Of a DNA stretch of 64,000 nt, positions 8,900-35,347 are shown piece by piece; within the stretch, counting starts at the first letter, position 1, and each line of letters begins with the position of its first letter. The position numbers were made by a program, and so were the translations under genes. The notes beneath the pieces are model-generated. The model was not told the origin of the DNA. It saw only the letters and a list, made by a program, of their open reading frames with translations, and made no database searches. The DNA is from Rebecca billardiae RCC1528 (Eukaryota > Protista > Haptophyta), in NCBI GenBank assembly GCA_965240325.2, contig OZ251226.1, positions 62,001 to 126,000 of the forward strand. Reading direction: 5' to 3'.

Positions 8900-10126
8900 A
8901 TGGCGGCACGCCGCGCGTGCTGCGCGCACGCGCTCCGGCTGGCGCCGGTGTGCGGCGCGGGCATGCTGTACAACATGCAGTCGCTCTGCGTCAACCTCCT
9001 CGCCTCGCGCCACGCGATCGGCCCCGCGCAGTCGCTGCTGGCGCGCGGGCTCGTGCAGGCGCTCGGCGTGTGCGCCGCGCTGTGCGCGCCGAGCGGCGCC
9101 GACGCGCGCGCCGTGATGCCCGGCCGCGACGCGCGCGAGCGGGCGCTCCTGCTGGCGCGCGGGGCGCTCGGCGCGCTGGCCAGCCTGCTCAACTCCGTCG
9201 CCATCGCGTACCTCCCCTTCGCCCAGGCGATGACGCTCGCGGCGACCGTGCCGCTCTGGCTGACGGCCATGGCCGCATGCGCGCTGCCGGAGTGCCCGTC
9301 GCGGGAGGAGCTACTCGCCGTGGCGCTCGGCATGCTCGGCGTGGTGCTGGTCAGCTTGGACGGCGCCCACGCCCACGCCGCCGCCGGCCCCGCGAGCCTC
9401 GCCCCCGCGCGCGCGCTCGCGCTCACGTGCGCGTCCCTGAGCTCAGCGCTGTGCAACGCGAGCGTGCTGCTGCTGATGCGCACGCTCGGCGTGCAGAGCA
9501 GGCCCGTGCCCGCGCTGGTGAGCACGGCGTACCAGACGGCGGGGCTGCTCGTCTTCGCGCCGCTCGCCGCGCGCGCCGCCGCCGTGAGCGCGTGGGCCGC
9601 GCCGCGCGGCCCCGAGGCGTGGGCGCTGCTGCTGCTGCCCGGGCCGTGCGCGCTCGGCGGCAGCCTGCTGCTGTACTGCGGGTTCGCACGCAACCGCTCC
9701 GCCGTGGGCGTGGTGGTGCTGCAGGCGTCCGAGACGCTGCCCGCGCTGCCCGTGCAGGCGCTTACGGCGCAGCCCATCGGCGCGCGGATGCTCAGCGGCA
9801 ACGCGCTCGTCGTGCTCTCCGCCGCCCTGGGCACGCTGAGCGCGGCGCGCAGGCGGCGCAGCGCCGAGCTGGCGGCGGGGCCGCCGGACGACGGCGAGGC
9901 CGTGGCGCCGACGCAGCGCGTGCAGGCGGAGCCGACCAGCGTGGACGAGCCGTGGCACGACGCCGATCCGTTCGGCGTGGACGCCACCGATGCTCTGACG
10001 CCAACCGCGTCGGCTGCTGCGCCACCCGCGTCAGGCGCGACGCCGTGGCCGATGGTCGCTGAGCCAGTCTCAGCGCAGGCATCGTCGCAGCGGCAGCCGC
10101 CGTCATCCGAGCTGCCGCTGCTATGA
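8900..10126 (+). CDS. EamA/DMT-family multi-pass membrane transporter
   Basis: About 10 hydrophobic segments; LLARGALGALASLLNSVAIAYLPFAQAMTLAATVPLW and ELLAVALGMLGVVLV resemble EamA repeat signatures. Confidence 0.7.
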   Translation: MAARRACCAHALRLAPVCGAGMLYNMQSLCVNLLASRHAIGPAQSLLARGLVQALGVCAALCAPSGADARAVMPGRDARERALLLARGALGALASLLNSVAIAYLPFAQAMTLAATVPLWLTAMAACALPECPSREELLAVALGMLGVVLVSLDGAHAHAAAGPASLAPARALALTCASLSSALCNASVLLLMRTLGVQSRPVPALVSTAYQTAGLLVFAPLAARAAAVSAWAAPRGPEAWALLLLPGPCALGGSLLLYCGFARNRSAVGVVVLQASETLPALPVQALTAQPIGARMLSGNALVVLSAALGTLSAARRRRSAELAAGPPDDGEAVAPTQRVQAEPTSVDEPWHDADPFGVDATDALTPTASAAAPPASGATPWPMVAEPVSAQASSQRQPPSSELPLL

Positions 10127-10624
10127 ACGACGATCGTGGCGGCTGAATCTGGAGCCTGATGTGATCGAGCCCGCCGGAGCCTGCTCCTCTAAGGCTCATC
10201 AGCCCGACGACTCAGTTACGCGCGGATATAGACTTCTCATCATAAGTGATACATACGTCGGAGACGCGGAGTCGTTACCGAGTGAGTGACGCACACACAC
10301 TCACACTGTGACTGTCACAGACACAGTGACACAGTGACACACTCCGACTACACTGGCACTAGCCACTAGGCCACTTCAATGTCTTCATCCGGCTCCACAA
10401 GTCCACAGACCGCGCACGGATTCTCACGGGACTACCTGATTTGTCAGCTTGCGCGTCACAGCTGCACACTGCTACACATCAGGGATTCGCAAGGCGCAAT
10501 CCGCGACTACTGTTTACGGTCTAGTTAGCCGCGAGCGCAGGCCGGCGGCGGCACGGGCGGGCGGGGCGCGCCGCCGCCGGGCCGCGGGCGGCGCGCGGGT
10601 CGGGCCCTCCGTGGAGGTGGTATA

Positions 10625-12515
10625 TAGGTGGGCCCACTGGCTACTGTGGGATTATAGTGGCGCAGAGCGCGAGCTCATAGCGCGGTGTTTAATTTCGTCT
10701 CGAGCTGGATTCCAGCCCCATGAGATGGCCCCTGGCCTGCCTGGTAAAAAAACCAGTGGTACATGCTGTAAATATAGGGCGTAACGGTGACCCTACTTAC
10801 TTATTGGAAATGGCCTGTGACCAATGTAACGACCATGTAACGGGCGTCTTAAACGTGATATATAGGGTCGGCAGACGTCACTTTGATATATCACTTTGAT
10901 GAGCTGATCATAGGTCTTCAGCAGCATGCACACTCATTGTCACATATACGGCGTATATGGGCACTCTGAGAATACGGGATAACGACCGTTACACCCGTGC
11001 GTTACATATACACCGCCATGCTGATCAGCATGGCTGCCATAGTATTTCAGACGGTTTCAGACTGCTCTCGTAGCAGCCGTACGGCGTGCATGTGACACCT
11101 AAGAATTTTTCCAACCCTTCTACCCTCGAAGGACGAGTCTTGCGGAGCCGTGGGCAAAGATTGAGCCTGACCGAGTCGCGGCGCCAGCCCGCCGGCCGTG
11201 GTCAAGGCAAGCAGGAGTGGGGCACGCGGCGCCGGGCACATCCAGCAGCCCGCAGCTTGAACACGGCGGACAAGGTTCGCCGAGTGCTCATCTGTGGCGT
11301 TCAAGGCAGGCACTGCTACGCATCGAATGCCTTTTCTCGTGCTCCGACCTAACCGTTGCTCTACATTGCGACCAAGCTGTGTCCGAGCTGTCCTCAGCTG
11401 GACCGTCCTCTGCCTAACTGTGCGCAACGGCCGATTCGTCGCAGCGCCGAGCTGGCTCGCCGTGGTGTGCGCGCGCGTAGCGATGTGCACTCATCACCGC
11501 TTCCTGCGTGGCAGCAGGGCAAGATATGGCTCACTGGTAAGCTGGTACGCCTGCTGACCGTGCACCGGCGTCGGCGGCGCCGCCAACGTGCTCGGGCAGG
11601 CTCACGAAGGGCTTAAATCACTGTTGAACGGATCAACTGTACTGTCCGCAGCGAGCACGGCGCACAGCGGATGACCAAGCAGAGGCGGGGCGACTGCTGT
11701 GCGGCCGCGCGGGGGAGTAGCTAGGCTCTTGAGGTACGCGTAGAGCCATGACAGGGCTCAACAAGCGCATCAGCTGCAATCTACCCGGCTCGACGCGCAG
11801 CCCGACCTCGTGCAATCGTGTGGCTCGAGGCCCTCCAAGTGGCTCGTAGCTTCCAAACACCCGAGGAGCGTCGGCACTGAGAGTTGAGTCGAGGCCGGGG
11901 AGGTGACAGACGGCACACGCATCCGCTTTGACCGCTGTTTGACCATCAGATCCTTCCCCAAGTGCCCACGATCGTGTGAACAGCCACAGCGTTCGGTCAC
12001 ACCGCACAGACTTCCGGGGACCTGACCGACGAGGCGGGCCTCCGCAGGGCCGCAGAAGTAGCTGGGCATTGCCAGGACACCATGCAGATGCTGTCCCAGT
12101 AACGTCCTGGAGTGTCCCAGTTCGTTCACGGGTGTCCCAAGCTCGCGTTGTGCACGCATTACAATCCCCAAAGCTGTTCCCGTGTTTGAACGCGCGACTG
12201 TCGGCGAGAGATGGCAGACCGGGAAGATGACCCAGGTATGAACCGTTCGCATGGCTCGTTCCAGAGGGCTACGCAGCATGCTACGGGCGTGCGGCGCAGC
12301 GTGCCTCGCATGGCAGGCGGGCAAGCGCGGCGGACAACGCGCTGACGACGCGCACAGGTCCATCCCGGTCATCGTTTTCGCGATCGATCGGCTTCCCGGA
12401 CCGGGAGTTCGGCGGCCTGGAAAAAGGGACTTCAGCGCGAGGAAAAGAGCACGGCTGCGGTCCGAAAAAGCCAGAGAGATTGTGTTTTGATTTTTAATTG
12501 CTGTGGGCCCACCTA
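10625..12515. mobile_element. Non-autonomous/degenerate DNA transposon with 13-bp TIRs and 7-bp target-site duplication
   Basis: TAGGTGGGCCCAC at 10625-10637 and its reverse complement GTGGGCCCACCTA at 12503-12515. TGGTATA flanks both sides (10618-10624, 12516-12522). Interior is lower in GC with no intact ORF. Confidence 0.75.
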
Positions 12516-14174: not shown

Positions 14175-14561
14175 ATGGCGAAGACTGTGACCCCCGGTGG
14201 CCGTGGCGGCTCGAAGAAGAAGTCGACCTCGCGCTCCGCGAAGGCCGGCCTCCAGTTCCCGGTGGGCCGCGTGCACCGGCACCTCAAGCTCGGCCGCTAC
14301 TCGCAGCGGATCGGCGCGGGTGCGCCGGTGTACATGGCCGCGGTCCTCGAGTACCTCGCCGCCGAGGTGCTCGAGCTCGCGGGCAACGCGGCGCGCGACA
14401 ACAAGAAGAGCCGCATCATCCCGCGCCACGTCACGCTCGCCGTGCGCAACGACGAGGAGCTGAACAAGCTGCTCGCGGGCGTGACGGTCGCGCAGGGTGG
14501 CGTGCTGCCCAACATCCACTCGGTCCTCCTCCCGAAGAAGGGCAAGAAGGGCGCTGAGTAA
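14175..14561 (+). CDS. H2A: Histone H2A (canonical type, tail KKGKKGAE); putative 5'-UTR intron 13864-14174 ending at the ATG
   Basis: [20 protein letters not shown]...[38 protein letters not shown]...[15 protein letters not shown] is the H2A signature. Confidence 0.97.
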
Positions 14562-15389: not shown

Positions 15390-16573
15390 TCACCTCTCCT
15401 CGACGGCGATGGCCGCGACGCCGGCCGCGAGGGCGCCCTCCGCCGTCGCCTGCTCCGGCTGCGGGTCCCGCCGCGACGTGGAACGGGGGCGATGGGGCGC
15501 GGGCGCGGCAGTGGATGGGGTGAGGATCTGCGTGCCCGCGCGCGGCAGCCCGCGCGTGGCTGCGCGTGCGCGCTCGCGTGCGCGCAACGGCCGCGCGGCG
15601 CGTCGCGCACCTTGGCGTGCGCGCTGCCGGCCGGCTGCGGCTGCTCGTCCGGCTGCGCCGACTTGGCGTCCGCCCGTCGCCGCCCGAGCGCGTCGACGCA
15701 CTTGTCGATCGAGACGGTCTCGGAGATGGCGTCCATCTTGGGCACGTACGTGGTGAAGTGCGGCGTGGCGAAGTGCGCCTCGAGGTGCGCCATCGACGCC
15801 CACTCCTCCGTGATCACGAAGCGCGTCGGCGAGTCGGCCGACTTGACAAAGTTGTACTTGAGCACGCCGGGCTCGCGCCACGTGTGGTGCGCGAGCTTCT
15901 CCGCCATGGCGAGCCACTCGGCCTGGTTGGCCTCAGGCACGTCCTTCGTCACGATCACGTGCACCGCGCCGGGCGCCATCGGCGCGCTCGCCGCGTCCTC
16001 CGCCCGGGCCTTCTCGGCGGTCGCGGCGTCGTCCGCCTTGGTCGTGAGCAGCGGGTGCAGCGACTTGCGCCCGTCGACGTAGACGGCGACCCACTCGGCG
16101 AGGCGCAGGCCCAGGCGCTCGCAAGCGAGCTTGTCGTGCTCGTTCCGCGGCTGCTTCGCCACCACCGCGCCGTAGTGCAGCGTGTGGATCTTGTCGACGT
16201 AGTCGGTCACGCCGAAGCTGAGGAAGCCAAAGTTCATCAGCACGGTCGACATGGCGAGGCAGGACATCTCGGCGCCGCCGCCGTGGCCGCCCTGCGAGGA
16301 GAAGACGGTGCACAGCTTGCCGTCGCACTTGTTCCAGTTGTCCGCGGCGAACTCGTCCCACCACTTCTTCATGCGCCACGCGATGCCGCCGAGGTTGGTC
16401 GGCGTGCCGACAGCGAGGCCGTCCGCCCACAGCACGTCTGCGTGCGTGCAGTCCTCGGTGGAGCGCAGGCGGATCTCGTGGCCGGGGATCTGCGAGGCGC
16501 CCGCGGCGACGAGCTTGCCCATCTCCGACGTGCAGTCCGTGTTCGAGTGGTAGAAGACGAGGATGCGGCCCAT
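15390..16573 (-). CDS. WrbA-like flavodoxin-fold NAD(P)H oxidoreductase fused to an ABM (antibiotic biosynthesis monooxygenase-like) domain; intron 15610-15459
   Basis: Flavodoxin/WrbA part: MGRILVFYHSNTDCT, ADVLWADGLAVGTPTNLGGIAWRMKKWWD, GKLCTVFSSQGGHGGGAE, LHYGAV, ACERLGLRLAE. ABM part: TWREPGVLKYNFVKSADSPTRFVITEEWASMAHLEAHFATPHF. Confidence 0.88.
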
Positions 16574-17056
16574 GTTCTCGGCGTGGACAGGTGGACTGCG
16601 ATGGTGGCCGTGTGCGTTTTGGCTTGACCTTCGAGCGGGCTCGTCTCTGATTCCACGATTCCAAAGATCCTCGCCGCCGAGGATCAGGGTACTGTCTATA
16701 GCCGTAGGGCAGAGTACTGAAGACAGCTTCCTCATAGGGCGGCGGACGCCGATTTCGGAGCGGGATTGATCGAGTTTTGCCAATGGCGAAGCCGCATTTA
16801 CCCGAGAGCAATCAAGGGCGCCTGGGAGGCGGCGGCGGCCGAGGGCTGCGATGCCAAAGCGCGCGCGATGATTGGCCAGGCCCCGCCTCCGGTGGTGCTG
16901 CGAGGTAAATCCGCCGCCTATCTGCCGCTGTCCCGTTTTGCATCCGGCCATATGCGGTACCACCGGCGGGTAAACGGCGGATACCTGCCGGCGCACGTCC
17001 CACAACCGCCCTGCGACACTCGAATGCAGCCACCTGCCACGCAGCACGCGCACGCC

Positions 17057-19832
17057 ATGACCGCGACCACGAACCGCCCGCTCCCGCTCGTCGGCCTCGA
17101 CACGCTCGGCTCGGGCGACGAGACGGAGGACATCACCAAGACGATCCGCACGGCCATCCGCGCCGGCGTCCGCCTCTTCGACTGCGCCTCGCTCCACGGC
17201 AACGAGGAGGAGGTCGGCGCGGCGCTGCGCGCCGCGATCGACGCGGGCGAGGTGTCGCGCGAGGAGCTCTACGTCGTGGCCAAGCTGTGGTGCGCGGACG
17301 CGGCGCCGGAGGACGTTGAGACCGCGTGCCGCCGCACGCTCGACAACCTCGGCCTCGACTACCTCGACGAGTACGCCATGCACTGGTGCGCGCGCCGCGC
17401 CGCGCCGCGCCGCGCGCAAGTCTGCGCGCGCTCGTGAGGCCGGAGCCCCACCGCGCGCACGCGCGCCCGCGCGCTCCCGTCTCACGCGCGCCGCGCGCTC
17501 CACTGCGCGCCGCCCACCGCCGCGCGCAGGCCCGTGCGCATGCGCCCCGGCTCGAACGCGCTCACCTTCTCGCTCGTGCACGGCGCGGAGCGCGCGCCGA
17601 TCGCTCAGACGTACGGCGCGATGGAGAGGCTGGTGGAGGGCGGGCTCGTGCGCGCGCTGGGCGTGAGCAACATGGACGCGCGCATGCTCACCGAGCTCGC
17701 CGCCGACTGCGCCGTCAAGCCGCGCTCCCTCCACGTCGAGGCGCACCCGTTCCTGCCACAGCCGGAGCTGCTGGGCGCGTGCGGCGCGCTGGGCGTGCGG
17801 CTGGTGGCGCACAGGCCGCTCGGGCAGGTGTGCGCGGCGCCGCGCGCGTGGGGGCGCGCGGCCCCGGCCGACGGCGCGCTCACCCGCGTGCCCCGCCCGT
17901 GCCACGATCTCGCGCCGCGCCCGCGCGCAGGAGGACGGCGGCGCGCACACGGACCTGCGCCTGTACCCGGCTGTGCAGGCGGTCGCGCTGGAGGCGAACA
18001 AGTCCGCGGCGCAGGTGCTGCTGCGCTGGGGCGTGCAGCGCGGCGCGAGCGTGGTGCCGCGCTCGGCGCCCACCACCGCCCTCGGCGTGCTCGACTGGCA
18101 GCTCTCCGCCGAGCAGATGGGCCGCCTCGACGCGCTCGCGCGCGGCCTCCGGTTTGCGCGCGTGCCGTGGTTCGACTTTGACGCGCGGCCGCCGCTCAAC
18201 GTGAACGTGGCGCCGCCGGGGCAGCCGCTGCTCAAGGCGGGCGAGGAGGACGCGCGCGGCTTCTACCGCAACACGTTTGGGCGCGACGGCAAGCCGCTGC
18301 ACACCGAGGTCGTCATCCGGCGCGGGCTGCTCCAGCGCGACGCGCTCGCGGCGCACGCGAAGCACTTCCTGCCCGAGAAGTGCCACGGCGCGCCCATCCA
18401 CGTGCTGACGGACAGCGTGGTGGACAAGATCTACGGCGAGCAGGTGGTCGCCGGGCTGCGCGCGGCGGGGCTCGAGGTGCACAAGACCGCGATGCCCTCC
18501 GACCTCGCCGACGCCGCGGGCGAGCCCTCGACCGAGCACCACAAGACGATGGCCGTGCTGAGCGCGTGCGCGGACGAGATCCTGTGCAACGGCATCAACA
18601 AGAACTCGGCGATCGTCTCGCTCGGCGGCGGCGTGGTGAACAACCTGGCGGGCGTGCTCGCGGGCATGCTGTACCGCGGCATCGCGCTCGTGCACCTGCC
18701 CACCACCACCATGTCCACCTTCGACCCGGCGCTCGACTTCAAGCAGGCGGTCAACCACCCGCTCGGCAAGAACCTGCTCGGCTGCTACTACCCGGCGAGC
18801 ACGATCGCGATCGACCCGGACGCGCTCTCGACGCTCAGCGAGCGGCACATCCTCAACGGCATCTCGGAGGCGCTCAAGCACGGGCTGACGCAGTCGCGCG
18901 AGCTCACCGACATGATCGTCGACCCGCTGCGCGCCGGCCGGCCGCTCACCGACGGGCAGTACCTCGAGCGCATCTGCAAGGCGGCGCTCGAGATCAAGGC
19001 GCCCACACTCGACGCGTACGAGAAGACGGACTACAACGAGGTGTGCCCGCAGTACGGCCACGCGATCGGGCACGCGGTGGAGCACCTCTCGTGGAGCGGC
19101 CCGCTGCACCGCCCGCTGCTGCACGGCGAGGCGGTGGCGATCGGCATGTGCGTCTCCGCCGAGATCGCGCTGCGCAAGGGCATCTGCACGCAGGCGGTCG
19201 TGGACGAGCACTACGAGCTGATCGGCGCGACCGGGCTGCCCGCGTTTGTGCCGCGCTCGATGGACGCGGACAGGCTGGTGCGCCAGATGCGCTTCGACAA
19301 GCACACGCTCAAGAGCCCGGCGATGGGGCTGTGCGCCGCGATCGGCGGCATGGCCACCGACGCGGAGCGCGGCACCTACTTCTTCGAGACCAGCGCCGAC
19401 GAGCTGCACGCCGCGCTGCAGGCGAACGCGGCGCGGCGCGACCTGACGGAGGGCTGCGTGCAGTGCGCGCCCGAGCCGGCGCGCGCGCCTGAGGCCACCG
19501 CCGGCGCCGACGCCCACGCGCCGCCGCCCGCCGCCGCCTCCGCCGCCGGCACGCGGCCCGCCTCGCCCGACCCCGATGCCGAGGCCTCGCGCCCCGCCTC
19601 GCCCGAGCCCTTCGACCCCTCGGAGCTGCCCGCCGTGCAGCTGCCGCCGCCGCTGCCGTTTGTGCGCGCGGCCGACGAGGCGGTGCTCAACAAGTACCGC
19701 ACCGAGTACGCGCAGTACCGCAAGGGCGGCGCGTGGGGCTCGCGCGGCGAGCTGACCAAGCTCGCCAAGCGCGCGGGCACGATGAAGCCGGCGGCGCCGG
19801 TGGCCAGCCTGGTGGTCGGCGCATCCGCATGA
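17057..19832 (+). CDS. Aldo-keto reductase fused to a sugar-phosphate cyclase (DHQS superfamily, 2-deoxy-scyllo-inosose synthase-like); introns 17386-17529 and 17828-17930
   Basis: AKR part: PLVGL, AIRAGVRLFDCA..GNEEEVGAALR, REELYVVAKLW, LGLDYLDEYAMHW|P, MERLVEGGLVRALGVSN, EAHPFLPQPEL, KSAAQVLLRWGVQRG..VVPRS. Cyclase part continues in the same frame: SLGGGVVNNLAG, YRGIALVHLPTT, FKQAVNHPLGKNLLGCYYP, GISEALKH, YGHAIGHAVE, LHGEAVAIGM, MRFDK. Confidence 0.9.
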
Positions 19833-30959: not shown

Positions 30960-32825
30960 ATGCGCAGGCTCCTCGCGCTCGTGCTGCTGGGCGCGGTGGG
31001 CGTCGGCGGCGCGCTCGGCGCGACGCTCGACGCGATGCGCGTCTGCCCTGACGGCGACGCCACCTGTGTCGCCGGATCGCCCTGCGCGGCCGCCGAGGCG
31101 CGCGCGCGCGCCGCGCGCGCCGAGGCGGACGCTTGGAGGTCGAGCGCGCGCGAGCTCAACCTGACGGTGGCGCAGCTCGGGCTGCAGATGGAGGAGCTGC
31201 GCGAGGCGCACGAGGCCGCGCTGCGCGACGCCGCCGCCTCCGCCGAGCGCCTCGTCGCCGAGCAGAGCCACGCGGCTGCCGCCCTCGACGCGGCCCTCGC
31301 GGCCTCGCGCCGGGTGCGCGCGCTGTTGCGCGCTGTTGCGCGCTGTTGCGCGGCGCGCGGGCGGCGCGCGCGGCGCGTGCCCGGCGCCTCGCGCGCGCCT
31401 CGCCCACCCGCGTCCCCCGCCCCGCCCCCGTCCTCCCGCCCCTCTCCGCAGGAGGTCGCCTCCCTCGAGCAGCGGCTGCTCGCGTCTGAGGCCGAGATGG
31501 CGCGCGTGGGCTCGCAGCTCCAGGCGCGCGCGCACGCGTCGAGCGTGCGCGAGGCGCACCTGCGCGTGCTGCAGGAGCAGCTGGACTCGGCGGAGGCGGC
31601 GATCAACCAGACCCTCGCCGCGCACCTCGTGCACGCCCTCGAGTCCACCGTCGACGAGGCCGGCGCCCTCGTCGAGAGCGCGCACACCGCCGTCCGCACC
31701 CTCGGCAACGCCACCGGCCGGACGGCCGCGGCCGCGCGCTTCGCCGCGTGGTGGCTGCGGCCCGCGCGCGGCGGCGCGAAGGGCGGCGGCGCGGCGGAGG
31801 AGGCGGAGGGCGCGGGGCCGCTCGCGAGGCTCGGCGCCGCGCTCGGCGCCACGCTCCCCGCCGCCGTGCGCGCGCCCTGTGGCGCCGCGGCGGCCGCGGC
31901 CGCGGCCGCGGCGCGCGCGGCGCTCGGCGCGGCCGCGCGCGCCGCCGGCGCCGCGTGCGCCGCGCCGCCCGCCGCGGCGGCGTGGCAGAGCGCGGCGGCG
32001 GGCGTGGGCGCGGCGGGCGCGCGGCTGTCGGGCGCGACCGACCTCCTCCGCGCCCGCGCCGCGCCCGCCCTCTCCGCCCTCTCCGCCGCGTGGGTCTCCG
32101 TGACGGTCCGCGACGCGTCGGCCGCCACCGCCGCCGACTGGGCGGCGCTGGGCGGCGCGAGCGTGGCCGTGCTCAGCGCGACGATGGCGGCGGTGCGCGC
32201 GGGGCGCTCGGCGGCGCTGCGCGTGGCGCTGCGCGCGTGGCTCGCGCTGCTCGCGGCCGCGCACGCCGCCCTCGCCTCGGGCCTCGCCGCGCCCGGCGGC
32301 GCCGTCGACGGCACCGCCTGCGGCGCGGGCGCGCACCGAGCGCTGCGCGCGGGCGGCGCGGGCGCGGCGCGCGCGATGCCGCTGTGGGCGGCGCCGGCGC
32401 TGCTCGCTGCGGCGGTGGGGCTGCCCTCGCGCTCGCGGCGCTCGTCGCGGGCGGCGCGCTGCGCGGCGACCGCCGCGCTCGGCGCGCTCCTCGCGCACGC
32501 CGGCGCGCTGCGGGTGCGCGCCTCGCGCGCAGCGCAGCGCGCAGCGCAGCGCGCAGCGCGCAGCGCGCAACGGCCGCGGCGCGCGCCCCGGCCGGCCGCC
32601 CGTCGCAGCCAGCGGCAGCAGCCGCCGCGCCTGCGCTCAGCTCACTCCGGCCCCGCCCGCGCCGCGCGCGCCACGCCACCTCCCTGCGTGCGTGCCGCCG
32701 TCCGCGCGCGCGCGCGCCTGGCGCAGGCGCAGAGTCTGGAGCAGCCCGCGACCGAGGCGGACGCGGTGGCGTGCGCGCTCTCCGCCGGCACCGCCGCGTG
32801 GCTGCTCATCGCGGCGCGCGGCTGA
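30960..32825 (+). CDS. Hypothetical protein with signal peptide, coiled coil and hydrophobic C-terminal segments; probable introns 31314-31451 and 32514-32726
   Basis: MRRLLALVLLGAVGVGG signal; heptad-like ELNLTVAQLGLQMEELREAHEAALRD and EVASLEQRLLASEAEMARV; in-frame GT-AG introns. Divergent from H2A.X. Confidence 0.6.
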   Translation: MRRLLALVLLGAVGVGGALGATLDAMRVCPDGDATCVAGSPCAAAEARARAARAEADAWRSSARELNLTVAQLGLQMEELREAHEAALRDAAASAERLVAEQSHAAAALDAALAASRRVRALLRAVARCCAARGRRARRVPGASRAPRPPASPAPPPSSRPSPQEVASLEQRLLASEAEMARVGSQLQARAHASSVREAHLRVLQEQLDSAEAAINQTLAAHLVHALESTVDEAGALVESAHTAVRTLGNATGRTAAAARFAAWWLRPARGGAKGGGAAEEAEGAGPLARLGAALGATLPAAVRAPCGAAAAAAAAAARAALGAAARAAGAACAAPPAAAAWQSAAAGVGAAGARLSGATDLLRARAAPALSALSAAWVSVTVRDASAATAADWAALGGASVAVLSATMAAVRAGRSAALRVALRAWLALLAAAHAALASGLAAPGGAVDGTACGAGAHRALRAGGAGAARAMPLWAAPALLAAAVGLPSRSRRSSRAARCAATAALGALLAHAGALRVRASRAAQRAAQRAARSAQRPRRAPRPAARRSQRQQPPRLRSAHSGPARAARATPPPCVRAAVRARARLAQAQSLEQPATEADAVACALSAGTAAWLLIAARG

Positions 32826-33047
32826 CCGTCGCGTGTCGTGACTCGCAGTCGTGAGCCCTCTCGCCAAGCCAGGCACCCGCTCGCCTCGTGTCGCTGTCGG
32901 GTACTCGAGTTCCTGTTGGCGCGGCAGGGGGGGGTATCTCCGTAGCTTCAAATACCCGTGTTATCAGCAAGATCCTGGCCCACTCAGACAGCTCAGTAGT
33001 CAGTGACTTACTGGCGCGGGCCCTCCTGAAAGCCAGCTAGGCGTCGA

Positions 33048-35347
33048 AGTGAAATTTTCCGGGAGATTTCAGATTCTGACTCCCCGGACTACAAATTTAC
33101 CCCTCTTTAGGCTACGAATTCTGGATGTCTTGAGAATTCTCATCGCGTTCAAGATTGGCTGTGATATATTCAGATAATACAAAGAATGGCGAGATATGCT
33201 TTACGACCGGTGCGCACATGGTCCGCATACACGATTGCACCACTATAAAAGAATGAACTCTACTATGCAGCCCATCTGTCGTGAATAAATGGTCCCTATG
33301 TCAAAGCGACGGTCGTAATCCGATCGAATACGTACACGGTAAATGGTGCCTATGTCAAGGTGACGGTCGTAATCCGATCGAATACGCAAACGGGTACGTC
33401 GATTACAAGATAGAGCCCGGACGACCGGACGTGGCCGACGACTCTTCCTTTCCAGCCTCGTCGCATCCAGCGCATCTGCCCAGCGAGCCCTCGCATGCGC
33501 ACACGCTGCGATATCACCAGCAGATAACGACGTTACCATGCACGGCGATGTGATGATCGGCACGGAGCGCGCCGCTGGCAAGCACACGATCGTACGCGAT
33601 TACGCCAGCGCCGTCGCACCCAGTCCGTCTTCACCTGCACCTTCTATGTTCCGTGGTTCCGTCACATCGGTCGACGCAGCACGCAGCGCAGCTGACGTTG
33701 TCGCCCGGCCGCACCATTCGCTCGCACACATCCTCGGTGAGCATCTTCCTCGTGTACGCGCATCGCTCTCCAAGCTGCACCCGTGCCGCAGTGCGCCGCC
33801 GGACATGGCCCTACTTGCTGCTGCGTATGAATCCAAACGATGTGGGAAGCCTCGATCACATTTCTACCCGGCCGACGCTCATCGCAAGGCGTGTGATCAA
33901 CGCGTGCGGCAGCTCGAGACGCTCCTGAAACGCGATGCCCACGACGTACACGCAGCGATCTGGCTCGGGCACGCTCTGCCACCGCCGCCCTGCGCCGGTA
34001 CCTGCTGCAGCAGTGCGGCTCCAACTGGAGCGTTCCTCAATGATGTCTGCTCTGCCACCAACAACACGTCCACGAATTCTGACTCGCCGATGATGCCCGA
34101 CCTCTCACACGCAACGCCGCCGTCGATGCACGCTTGCACCATCTCGCAACTCCCAAACTTTTCCGCCGCCATCGGTACCACACCTGCGCGCGCTTACGAC
34201 ATGCTCGCGGCGCATGACCTTGTCCTAAGCACGGCAGATCTTCACGCTCTCGAGCTGCAGTGCAATGCCGTCAGCTCCCACCGACCGCTCTCTCAACTCG
34301 TTCCGGCGGCGGACTACCATTCCGTCAACACCCGATTGTGGCGGCTGGGCGTGCGCATCAACCTCATTTCGCCCGCCTTGCACGGCCGCATCTGGCCGCA
34401 GCAGCAGTCCGCCGTCGCCGCCTGTGCCCACGCTCCCACCACCACCGCCTCCAACCCGACTCCACTCAACCCGCTCGGCGCTGCGTCGTTCTCGGCAGCC
34501 CAGTCGAGCGCAGCGGTGGCAGGCGACGACGAAACCGACACGTTCAAGGCGCTCCTCGTCGCGCTCGAGCACTTCGAGAAGCCGATCGACGACGACCACG
34601 GCCGCGCGCGCAAGGATCTGTGTCCTCTCACTTCTGCACTGGCGCGCGCGCGCGCGCGCGGCGGCGATGACTGACCGTACTTCATTTACACTTCCTGTCG
34701 CGCGACAGTGTACCTCTGCATCATACGTACTGCCCGTACGGCTGCATCCGAGTACGTTTGTTCGTCCTGGATGTTCCATTTGCCAGCTACCTCTCTCCGA
34801 GGCCTCACGCGTTCGGCTGCCTACTGGGCCCTTGGCTGCCAGCTACGATCCGAATGGAGTCTCTCTTGCGCGCGCGCGCGGCGCGCGCGGCGCCGCCAAC
34901 TCTGGTGAGAGCCTCCGCCTGTATCCTGCCTTACTGCCGGCCTCTACCGGCCGTCAGTGGCTATGTTGCCAAGGGCCGCCGACGGTTGGCCCGACTAAAG
35001 TTCTCGTTAGACACTGTGGTCTAAGAGGGGATATATATATAAGACGGTAATCGACGATCGTCGATCGGCCGGCCGCGGTAACGACTAGTATACGCGGAGG
35101 AGTCGGGGCGGTAGGCGGGAGGAGCACCGACGAGTCGCGTCACCGTGACACTGACGTCACTGACGATGAGTGACATCAGCAGGCGGGCTCTGGCCTTCGG
35201 TTGACCCCTGCCAGAGACGGGCACTGTGATGAGCTCCTTCATGACGAAGTCATCACTGCTCGTGAATAAAACTGCACAGGAGGACGACCTCAATGGAGTG
35301 AAATCTTCCGGGAGATTTCAGATTCTGACTCCCCGGACTACAAATTT
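33048..35347. repeat. 51-bp hairpin-forming direct repeats (33048-33098, 35297-35347) bracketing a lower-GC 2.2-kb segment
   Basis: AGTGAAATYTTCCGGGAGATTTCAGATTCTGACTCCCCGGACTACAAATTT occurs twice with 1 mismatch. Confidence 0.85.
33538..34674 (+). CDS. Hypothetical intronless ORF in a lower-GC, possibly mobile segment
   Basis: 378-aa ORF with non-low-complexity composition and atypical codon usage; no recognisable domain. Confidence 0.35.
   Translation: MHGDVMIGTERAAGKHTIVRDYASAVAPSPSSPAPSMFRGSVTSVDAARSAADVVARPHHSLAHILGEHLPRVRASLSKLHPCRSAPPDMALLAAAYESKRCGKPRSHFYPADAHRKACDQRVRQLETLLKRDAHDVHAAIWLGHALPPPPCAGTCCSSAAPTGAFLNDVCSATNNTSTNSDSPMMPDLSHATPPSMHACTISQLPNFSAAIGTTPARAYDMLAAHDLVLSTADLHALELQCNAVSSHRPLSQLVPAADYHSVNTRLWRLGVRINLISPALHGRIWPQQQSAVAACAHAPTTTASNPTPLNPLGAASFSAAQSSAAVAGDDETDTFKALLVALEHFEKPIDDDHGRARKDLCPLTSALARARARGGDD

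Follow-up and report, generated by a model that had tools for sequence, protein, structure and literature searches.

A divergent gene pair in Rebecca billardiae: a candidate copy of a conserved algal module around an uncharacterised sugar-phosphate cyclase clade

Introduction

For the sugar-phosphate cyclase superfamily a 2026 review lists MIPS, DOIS, DDGS, EEVS, EVS, DHQS and DEIS only, while a paper on gene neighbourhoods in green algae concerns EEVS, a family other than that of the cyclase described here. Among the solutes that haptophytes and diatoms regulate with salinity are cyclohexanetetrol and related deoxy-cyclitols. The tetrol is said to have been found in Monochrysis (now Diacronema) lutheri by Ramanathan et al. 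in 1966 and by Craigie in 1969. It has also been reported in Nitzschia ovalis and Chaetoceros muelleri and, putatively by nuclear magnetic resonance (NMR), in Isochrysis galbana. In a literature search we found no paper that names cyclohexanetetrol genes or describes the fusion of an aldo-keto reductase (AKR) to the cyclase; an earlier sequence-only reading of the present DNA had likewise known of no described genes for the tetrol. Here we analyse 64,000 nucleotides of the haptophyte Rebecca billardiae RCC1528 (contig OZ251226.1, positions 62,001 to 126,000; hereafter the window), in which two genes diverge from a short spacer, a plus-strand gene encoding an AKR-cyclase fusion and a minus-strand gene encoding a flavodoxin-like domain followed by an ABM domain. 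We propose with moderate confidence, from sequence comparison, that the pair represents one copy of a pathway module conserved in algae and centred on an uncharacterised cyclase clade, with a deoxygenated cyclitol as its product.

Several enzymes provide precedents for such chemistry. IolE dehydrates 2-keto-myo-inositol, a precedent for the conversion of an inosose into a cyclohexane-1,2-dione, and LsrG, one of the ABM enzymes, isomerises a 2,3-dione. ThuA has a link to the metabolism of 3-keto-sugars, as its Pfam description also states, and such sugars chemically resemble inososes. Ketoreduction of 2-deoxy-scyllo-inosose (DOI) is facile, since yeast reduces DOI to quercitols.

Results

The gene pair recurs in other algae and is probably inherited as a unit

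Both gene models, together with matches in Pfam and the Protein Data Bank (PDB), agree with the sequence-only reading in that two divergent fusion genes carry four domains on either side of a single spacer (Table 1). In D. lutheri (GCA_019448385.1, contig JAGTXO010000007.1, locus L014), a gene on the minus strand for a 589-amino-acid flavodoxin-ABM-ThuA protein, a His_Phos_1 gene and the AKR-cyclase gene KAG8466660.1 stand consecutively within 5.7 kb, and three metagenome contigs (L009-L011) hold a trio of identical makeup. In Nitzschia inconspicua the AKR-cyclase gene lies head-to-head with a gene for a 642-amino-acid ABM-flavodoxin-ThuA protein, an arrangement repeated on an uncultured diatom-like contig (L007). 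Further co-located pairs (P0017/P0280 and P0064/P0278) are suggested by longest contigs of equal size. The two genes are neighbours in D. lutheri, the classical producer of the tetrol, in N. inconspicua and on L007, and are not adjacent in Pavlovales sp. CCMP2436 or, going by the Pfam lists of called genes, in some other lineages.

D. lutheri, N. inconspicua, Entomoneis, Norrisiella, Monosiga and Porphyridium are the six named taxa with members of both families. Fusion of the cyclase to an AKR is frequent among diatoms and Pavlovales, and cyclases of the clade that stand alone were seen in Prymnesium, Porphyridium, Erythrolobus, Norrisiella, an ochromonad, Chrysophaeum, Salpingoeca and Monosiga. 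The partner, which is found in the domain orders Flav-ABM-ThuA, ABM-Flav-ThuA and SDR-Flav-ABM-ThuA (SDR, short-chain dehydrogenase/reductase), is almost confined to eukaryotes, the bacterial matches being two weak ones to the ThuA domain.

In the cyclase tree the window copy is sister to the Pavlovales clade (support 100/100), and the flavodoxin-ABM tree places it sister to that same clade (83/85), a congruence indicating that the pair was inherited together. Recurrent adjacency, varied fusions and congruent trees all argue against a chance pairing, so that the two genes appear to behave as one functional unit, and the partnership is probably a single pathway. The best matches of the window proteins are all from Pavlovales, with GC contents of 72.4% for the window and 73.25% for D. 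lutheri, which marks the source as a Pavlovales-type alga. Over the first 320 residues of the 589-residue D. lutheri protein, the minus-strand protein shows 75% identity. At the DNA level, blastn similarity between the window and the D. lutheri locus (75-81% identity) falls inside the two genes only, and tblastx of the window against that locus returned noise only. No identical database protein was found for the window pair, the annotated D. lutheri set being likewise without a match.

Most relatives of the flavoprotein, including its closest ones (the D. lutheri clade), also carry ThuA. This domain was absent from the 64-kb window in tblastn searches with six ThuA queries, and so was His_Phos_1, which D. 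lutheri adds to the set; both absences correct the picture of a four-activity cluster given in the sequence-only reading. For the ThuA domain no solved structure was found as a sequence relative.

The cyclase belongs to a clade apart from DHQS and BtrC

With the cyclase domain as a single query, the DOI synthase BtrC was the best match in the PDB (2.5e-40, 142 bits), followed by plant DHQS (6e-38, 134 bits), while EEVS and DDGS structures gave much weaker matches. A profile built from 17 family members, by contrast, ranks DHQS over BtrC (215 versus 192 bits), and the AlphaFold model of the cyclase (pLDDT 89) ties the DHQS and DOIS folds at a TM score of about 0.8 in Foldseek, with values of 0.80-0.83 to the BtrC structures 2GRU and 2D2X. 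The equivalents of the metal ligands, E183, H246 and H262, are invariant in the family. The Lys141 motif of DOIS (IKQAVN) is present as DFKQAVN, with DFKQAxN in 123 of 126 family members, and the position of the catalytic Glu243 of BtrC is occupied by Gln, within a PQYGH motif, in 120 of the 126. Alignment to 3ZOK places Glu at the position of DHQS Arg264 (codon 19038-19040) and Gln at that of DHQS Asn268, equivalent to BtrC Glu243 (codon 19050-19052).

Identity with the shikimate-pathway DHQS was considered and rejected on the replacement of the DAHP-binding residues, Arg264 by Glu and Asn268 by Gln, and on the score against the aroB equivalog TIGR01357, which at 194 bits lies under the cut-off of 305. 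Altogether, the profile scores, the tied folds, the Gln at Glu243, the Glu at Arg264 and the aroB score below its cut-off indicate a distinct, uncharacterised clade that is neither DHQS nor a demonstrated DOIS and, as judged from sequence and model, lies about equally far from both. The DOI-synthase-like assignment of the sequence-only reading was not clearly supported, given the higher profile score of DHQS, the fold tie and the loss of Glu243. The substrate may be glucose 6-phosphate, mannose 6-phosphate or sedoheptulose 7-phosphate.

Several cyclases of the clade (P0018, P0056, P0068, P0069, P0073 and P0012) end in short motifs of the Cys-x-Cys type, and the window protein does not. Such tails, seen in many cyclases of the clade, are possibly lipidation or metal-binding motifs.

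Bacterial cyclases of the same clade

The bacterial cyclases of the clade are 39-44% identical and have the same motifs (DFKQAxN and PQYGH). At two loci (L012 6706-17633 and L013 8941-16717) the cyclase is fused to a nucleotidyltransferase in a conserved operon, together with genes for an SDR, an APH-type kinase, a second nucleotidyltransferase, methyltransferases, a CDP-alcohol phosphatidyltransferase and a glycerophosphotransferase; the operon looks like one for the synthesis of a cyclitol activated with cytidine diphosphate (CDP) and destined for a surface polymer. Stand-alone cyclases of the clade were found in cultured Burkholderiaceae, namely Burkholderia diffusa (L030), Trinickia symbiotica and Paraburkholderia atlantica (also L027 and L028). 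At the one locus examined, that of B. diffusa (L030 2570-12092), the genes around the cyclase encode an SDR, GT4 glycosyltransferases and a UDP-GlcNAc 2-epimerase, a setting suggestive of a polysaccharide with a carbocyclic unit. Since an SDR lies beside the bacterial cyclases or is fused to them, cyclase plus ketoreductase appears to be the constant core of the loci of this clade.

The AKR part has diverged in the window copy

The AKR barrel of the plus-strand protein is recognised by Pfam PF00248 on exons 1 and 2. Its catalytic tetrad Asp-Tyr-Lys-His is incomplete: Asp42, Lys and His are kept, and Tyr is replaced by His47 (CAC, 17195-17197), so that the motif reads FDCASLHGNE. About 30 of the related AKR-cyclase fusions have ..LYGNE here, and outside the window copy the Tyr has been lost only in the fusion P0024 of the euglenid Anisonema. 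In an alignment of 15 fusions two cofactor motifs are altered in the window copy alone, YSPLG becoming HRPLG and IPKSxxxxRIxxN becoming VPRSAPTTAL, where the conserved Arg and Asn have gone with a four-residue deletion. Compared with diatom AKR domains, that of the window copy has 42-43% identity and that of D. lutheri 50-55%, while the cyclase domains of both are conserved to an equal degree against diatoms. With the Tyr and two cofactor motifs lost and the domain additionally diverged, NADPH-dependent reductase activity is doubtful for the window copy, and so is the ketoreduction that the sequence-only reading had assigned to it.

The cyclase and flavodoxin-ABM parts of the window copy keep all residues that are invariant in their families. 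Taken with the degenerate AKR and the missing ThuA, this makes the copy probably a divergent, reduced paralogue or an early-branching orthologue, which probably supplies cyclase and flavoprotein activity and leans on other loci for reduction.

Gene models and domains of the window locus

The nearest solved relative of the flavodoxin-like domain is 2ARK, annotated as 'flavodoxin' (2.7e-66), with WrbA structures at about 1e-9. Neither WrbA equivalog is reached (NF002999, 48.6 bits against a cut-off of 141; TIGR01755, 37.4 bits against 132), which makes the label WrbA, used in the sequence-only reading, too loose. The ABM domain passes the Pfam gathering score (60 bits versus 23.1) and matches 4hl9 (5e-7), YgiN (1.4e-4) and LsrG (4e-3) in the PDB.

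Both genes show extreme codon periodicity, with a GC content at third codon positions (GC3) of 0.97-1.0 and of about 0.98 in the main exon of the minus gene. The plus gene (17057-19832; ATG at 17057, TGA at 19830-19832) encodes 842 amino acids and, once its introns are removed, is in frame and collinear with its orthologues; exon 3 spans 17931-19832. The introns are GC-rich, with donors GTGCGC.. and GTGTGC.. and acceptors ..GCGCGCAG, and the blastn match with the D. lutheri gene breaks off at 17386, where intron 1 starts. For the minus gene, the frame read without the 83-nt intron stays open to 15170. Homology to relatives and codon periodicity end at about 15600-15660, and the putative last exon has a better coding periodicity (GC3 0.89 and GC2, at second positions, 0.67, compared with a uniform 0.79 when the frame is read through); for these two reasons a gene end at 15390 by way of the intron plausibly fits better than read-through.

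Table 1. Features of the gene pair in the window (positions counted from the first letter of the window)
Feature	Positions	Strand	Basis or remark
Putative minus-gene last exon, 45 codons + TGA	15390-15527	-	mildly hydrophobic Ala/Gly/Val-rich tail
Putative minus-gene intron, 83 nt	15528-15610	-	GTGCGC donor, CACGCAG acceptor; donor type resembles plus-gene introns
Minus-gene main exon	15611-16573	-	ATG 16573; 321 codons; flavodoxin-like FMN reductase domain, linker, ABM
ABM domain (ferredoxin-like, YgiN/LsrG-type), residues 204-294	15692-15964	-	Pfam ABM 2.5e-16
Flavodoxin-like domain (2ark-type, WrbA-related), residues 1-173	16055-16573	-	PDB and NCBIfam matches
Divergent intergenic spacer, 483 bp	16574-17056		between the two ATGs; GC down to ~0.63; presumed bidirectional promoter
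Plus-gene exon 1, AKR N-terminal part	17057-17385	+	Pfam Aldo_ket_red 2e-15
Plus-gene intron 1, 144 nt, GT..AG	17386-17529	+	removal restores conserved MHWPV junction
Plus-gene exon 2, AKR middle part	17530-17827	+	Pfam Aldo_ket_red 6e-11
Plus-gene intron 2, 103 nt, GT..AG	17828-17930	+	frame and orthologue alignment restored
Exon 3 start, AKR C-terminal part, degenerate cofactor motif	17931-18173	+	alignment of 15 fusions
Sugar-phosphate cyclase domain (DHQS superfamily, DFKQAVN / NE..PQYGH clade)	18306-19403	+	Pfam DHQ_synthase 1e-26, DHQS_C 3e-21
Plus-gene low-complexity C-terminal tail + TGA	19404-19832	+	unconserved versus orthologues; codon periodicity to ~19700

Elsewhere in the window, a canonical histone H2A gene (14175-14561, plus strand) lies about 830 bp past the putative 3' end of the minus gene; a search of the public gene collection returned no exact copy of its protein. 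Two stretches (10000-12400 and 32800-33400) have a GC content of about 0.45-0.6 against a background of 72%, show no codon periodicity and may be repeat or transposon sequence.

Further observations at related loci

In the D. lutheri cluster (L014 4320-9765) the His_Phos_1 gene stands between the two pathway genes, with a gene for an 814-amino-acid thiamine pyrophosphate (TPP) enzyme alongside. The His_Phos_1 protein might bear on the sugar phosphate that feeds the cyclase. The TPP enzyme was considered as an IolD-like dione hydrolase and dropped, its matches being to an acetolactate-synthase-type model and to benzoylformate decarboxylase.

In pelagophytes and Chrysotila (P0267, P0268, P0290 and P0292) an extended SDR of the epimerase/dehydratase type is fused ahead of flavodoxin-ABM-ThuA. 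Pavlovales sp. CCMP2436 has a gene of this extended-SDR type (L001 4334-5432), divergent and 4.5 kb from its flavodoxin-ABM gene. The latter, P0123 (313 amino acids, L001 10001-11722), is probably a truncated public gene model, since its C-terminal end matches the beginning of the ThuA domain of D. lutheri. The short flavodoxin-ABM proteins were also considered as a separate paralogue class, which was rejected; the tree groups one of them, P0121, with a long form, so that several of the short entries are probably truncated records. Finally, two cyclase paralogues of the clade lie head-to-head in Porphyridium purpureum (L016 7256-11287), where no flavodoxin-ABM gene is among the called neighbours.

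Discussion

In the proposed pathway the cyclase, with NAD+ and a metal, would convert a hexose 6-phosphate, glucose 6-phosphate being favoured, into a deoxy-inosose with release of phosphate; the fused AKR of the canonical copies would reduce the ring ketone, and the flavodoxin-like plus ABM (plus ThuA) protein would carry out the remaining dehydration, tautomerisation and redox tailoring. The end product would be a deoxygenated cyclitol, for which 1,4/2,5-cyclohexanetetrol is the best candidate. An IolE-like dehydration could remove the C2 proton and the C3 hydroxyl of DOI to give 4,5-dihydroxycyclohexane-1,2-dione, and two ketoreductions of this dione would leave hydroxyls at positions 1, 2, 4 and 5, that is, a 1,2,4,5-tetrol. 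The reductase would set both new stereocentres, in keeping with the chiral 1,4/2,5 isomer, and the flavoprotein may reduce an enol-one or a dione. The full cluster is found in D. lutheri and in a Nitzschia species. That the conserved set (the cyclase clade, AKR and flavodoxin-ABM-ThuA) is the route to this tetrol, with ABM and/or ThuA performing the IolE-like dehydration and tautomerisation, is a tentative suggestion, which we rate as possible and not as probable.

Several observations weigh against the cyclitol module or its tetrol product. For the cyclase, these are the preference of the family profile for DHQS, the tie of the modelled folds and the Gln in place of the catalytic Glu243; for the AKR, the doubtful ketoreduction at the window locus. 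A recognisable dehydratase is missing. The two genes are not adjacent in CCMP2436 and, judging only from the Pfam lists of called genes, in Prymnesium, Porphyridium, Monosiga and one diatom-like lineage. Choanoflagellates and Porphyridium hold both genes and are, to our knowledge, not known as tetrol producers, and the His_Phos_1 gene of D. lutheri could hint at a supply of sedoheptulose 7-phosphate. The cyclitol interpretation of the sequence-only reading consequently stands in part: a deoxy-cyclitol chemistry is plausible, but the cyclase is not clearly a DOIS and the AKR of the window copy looks impaired.

The most serious of the rival explanations, which we regard as unlikely, retains the module and changes its chemistry, the cyclase taking sedoheptulose 7-phosphate or another sugar phosphate and the product being a cyclitol, of the C7 or another type, with no relation to cyclohexanetetrol. 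The histidine-phosphatase superfamily includes sedoheptulose bisphosphatase, and a gene of that superfamily lies inside the D. lutheri cluster. The family profile does not favour DOIS, the active-site pair of Glu (at Arg264) and Gln (at Asn268/Glu243) is unlike that of DHQS and of BtrC, the two solved types compared at these positions, and EboD shows that new specificities are still being found in the superfamily. On the other hand, the cyclase has the DOIS-type KQAVN and GGGxxxN motifs and BtrC as its best single-sequence match, EEVS and DDGS structures score clearly lower, and the distribution of the C6 tetrol overlaps that of the cluster.

An improbable alternative is a quinone route, in which dehydration of the inosose would give an aromatic triol or a quinone, with the flavodoxin-like and ABM domains forming a quinone reductase/quinol monooxygenase cycle of the MdaB/WrbA-YgiN type. 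In E. coli a flavoprotein quinone reductase is known to pair with an ABM quinol monooxygenase, and chemical dehydration of DOI yields benzenoids, both of which count in favour of this route, as do the resemblance of the ABM domain to YgiN (1.4e-4) and that of the flavodoxin-like domain to NAD(P)H:quinone oxidoreductases. The constant association with a ketoreductase (AKR or SDR) and with ThuA better suits a saturated cyclitol chemistry, however, and we know of no such aromatic product from these algae.

We likewise give little credence to a bidirectional promoter shared without a common pathway, or to a decaying, functionless duplicate: the pair is unlinked in several genomes, the window lacks ThuA, and its AKR, about 10 points more diverged than that of D. 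lutheri while the cyclase is not, has lost cofactor motifs that no other copy has lost, and a Tyr lost also in Anisonema, but the neighbourhood recurs in two algal phyla with the domains fused in several orders, the gene trees are congruent, the frames are intact with a GC3 of 0.97-1.0, and the family-invariant cyclase and flavodoxin-ABM residues are all kept.

With the deoxygenated-cyclitol module as the preferred reading, a single odd gene pair becomes a defined and conserved candidate set, with its canonical version in D. lutheri and Nitzschia, and the origin of algal deoxy-cyclitols becomes testable. Concomitantly, the widespread eukaryotic flavodoxin-ABM-ThuA fusion proteins gain a first functional context.

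Comparison with known systems

The closest characterised cyclase by single-sequence match, BtrC of aminoglycoside pathways (2D2X/2GRU), shares with the window cyclase the fold, the metal-ligand Glu and two His, the K141-type KQAVN, the GGGxxxN and the YYP motifs, and the lack of the DHQS Arg264. Identity over the whole domain is 27-28% in Foldseek, and is estimated at roughly 35-45% in the best-conserved HMMER block. The window enzyme differs in its Gln for Glu243, in an invariant Asn-Glu five and four residues upstream of it, and in being eukaryotic, fused to an AKR and without an aminotransferase partner. DHQS, as AroB or as a domain of AROM, shares the superfamily, the fold, the NAD+/metal chemistry and the top profile score, whereas the window cyclase has Glu for Arg264, Gln for Asn268 and DFKQ for GGKT, and is fused to an AKR and not to shikimate enzymes.

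The gadusol pair of EEVS and MT-Ox in vertebrates and some algae, and EboD (DEIS) of the ebo cluster, resemble the window locus in having cyclase genes beside those for tailoring enzymes; they belong to other cyclase clades (the EEVS structure scores lower), have other partners and lead to C7 or mannose-derived products. The bacterial fusions of a nucleotidyltransferase (NTP_transferase) to the cyclase and the cyclases of Burkholderiaceae belong to the same clade and always have a ketoreductase (SDR) adjacent or fused, but their context is one of kinase, nucleotidyltransferase and CDP-alcohol or glycerophospho-transferases, or of GT4 enzymes, with no flavodoxin-ABM-ThuA. Inositol catabolism by IolG and IolE, together with the reductases that take DOI to quercitols, provides the precedent for dehydration of an inosose and for ketoreduction of DOI, although no protein of the IolE type (xylose-isomerase-like) is present in the window. 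Finally, compared with 2ARK, WrbA, YgiN and LsrG, the flavodoxin-like domain of the window matches 2ARK and the ABM domain is a typical single ABM repeat; the differences are that the flavodoxin-like domain meets no WrbA equivalog, that it is fused to ABM in a gene linked to a cyclase gene, and that most relatives of this flavoprotein are also fused to ThuA.

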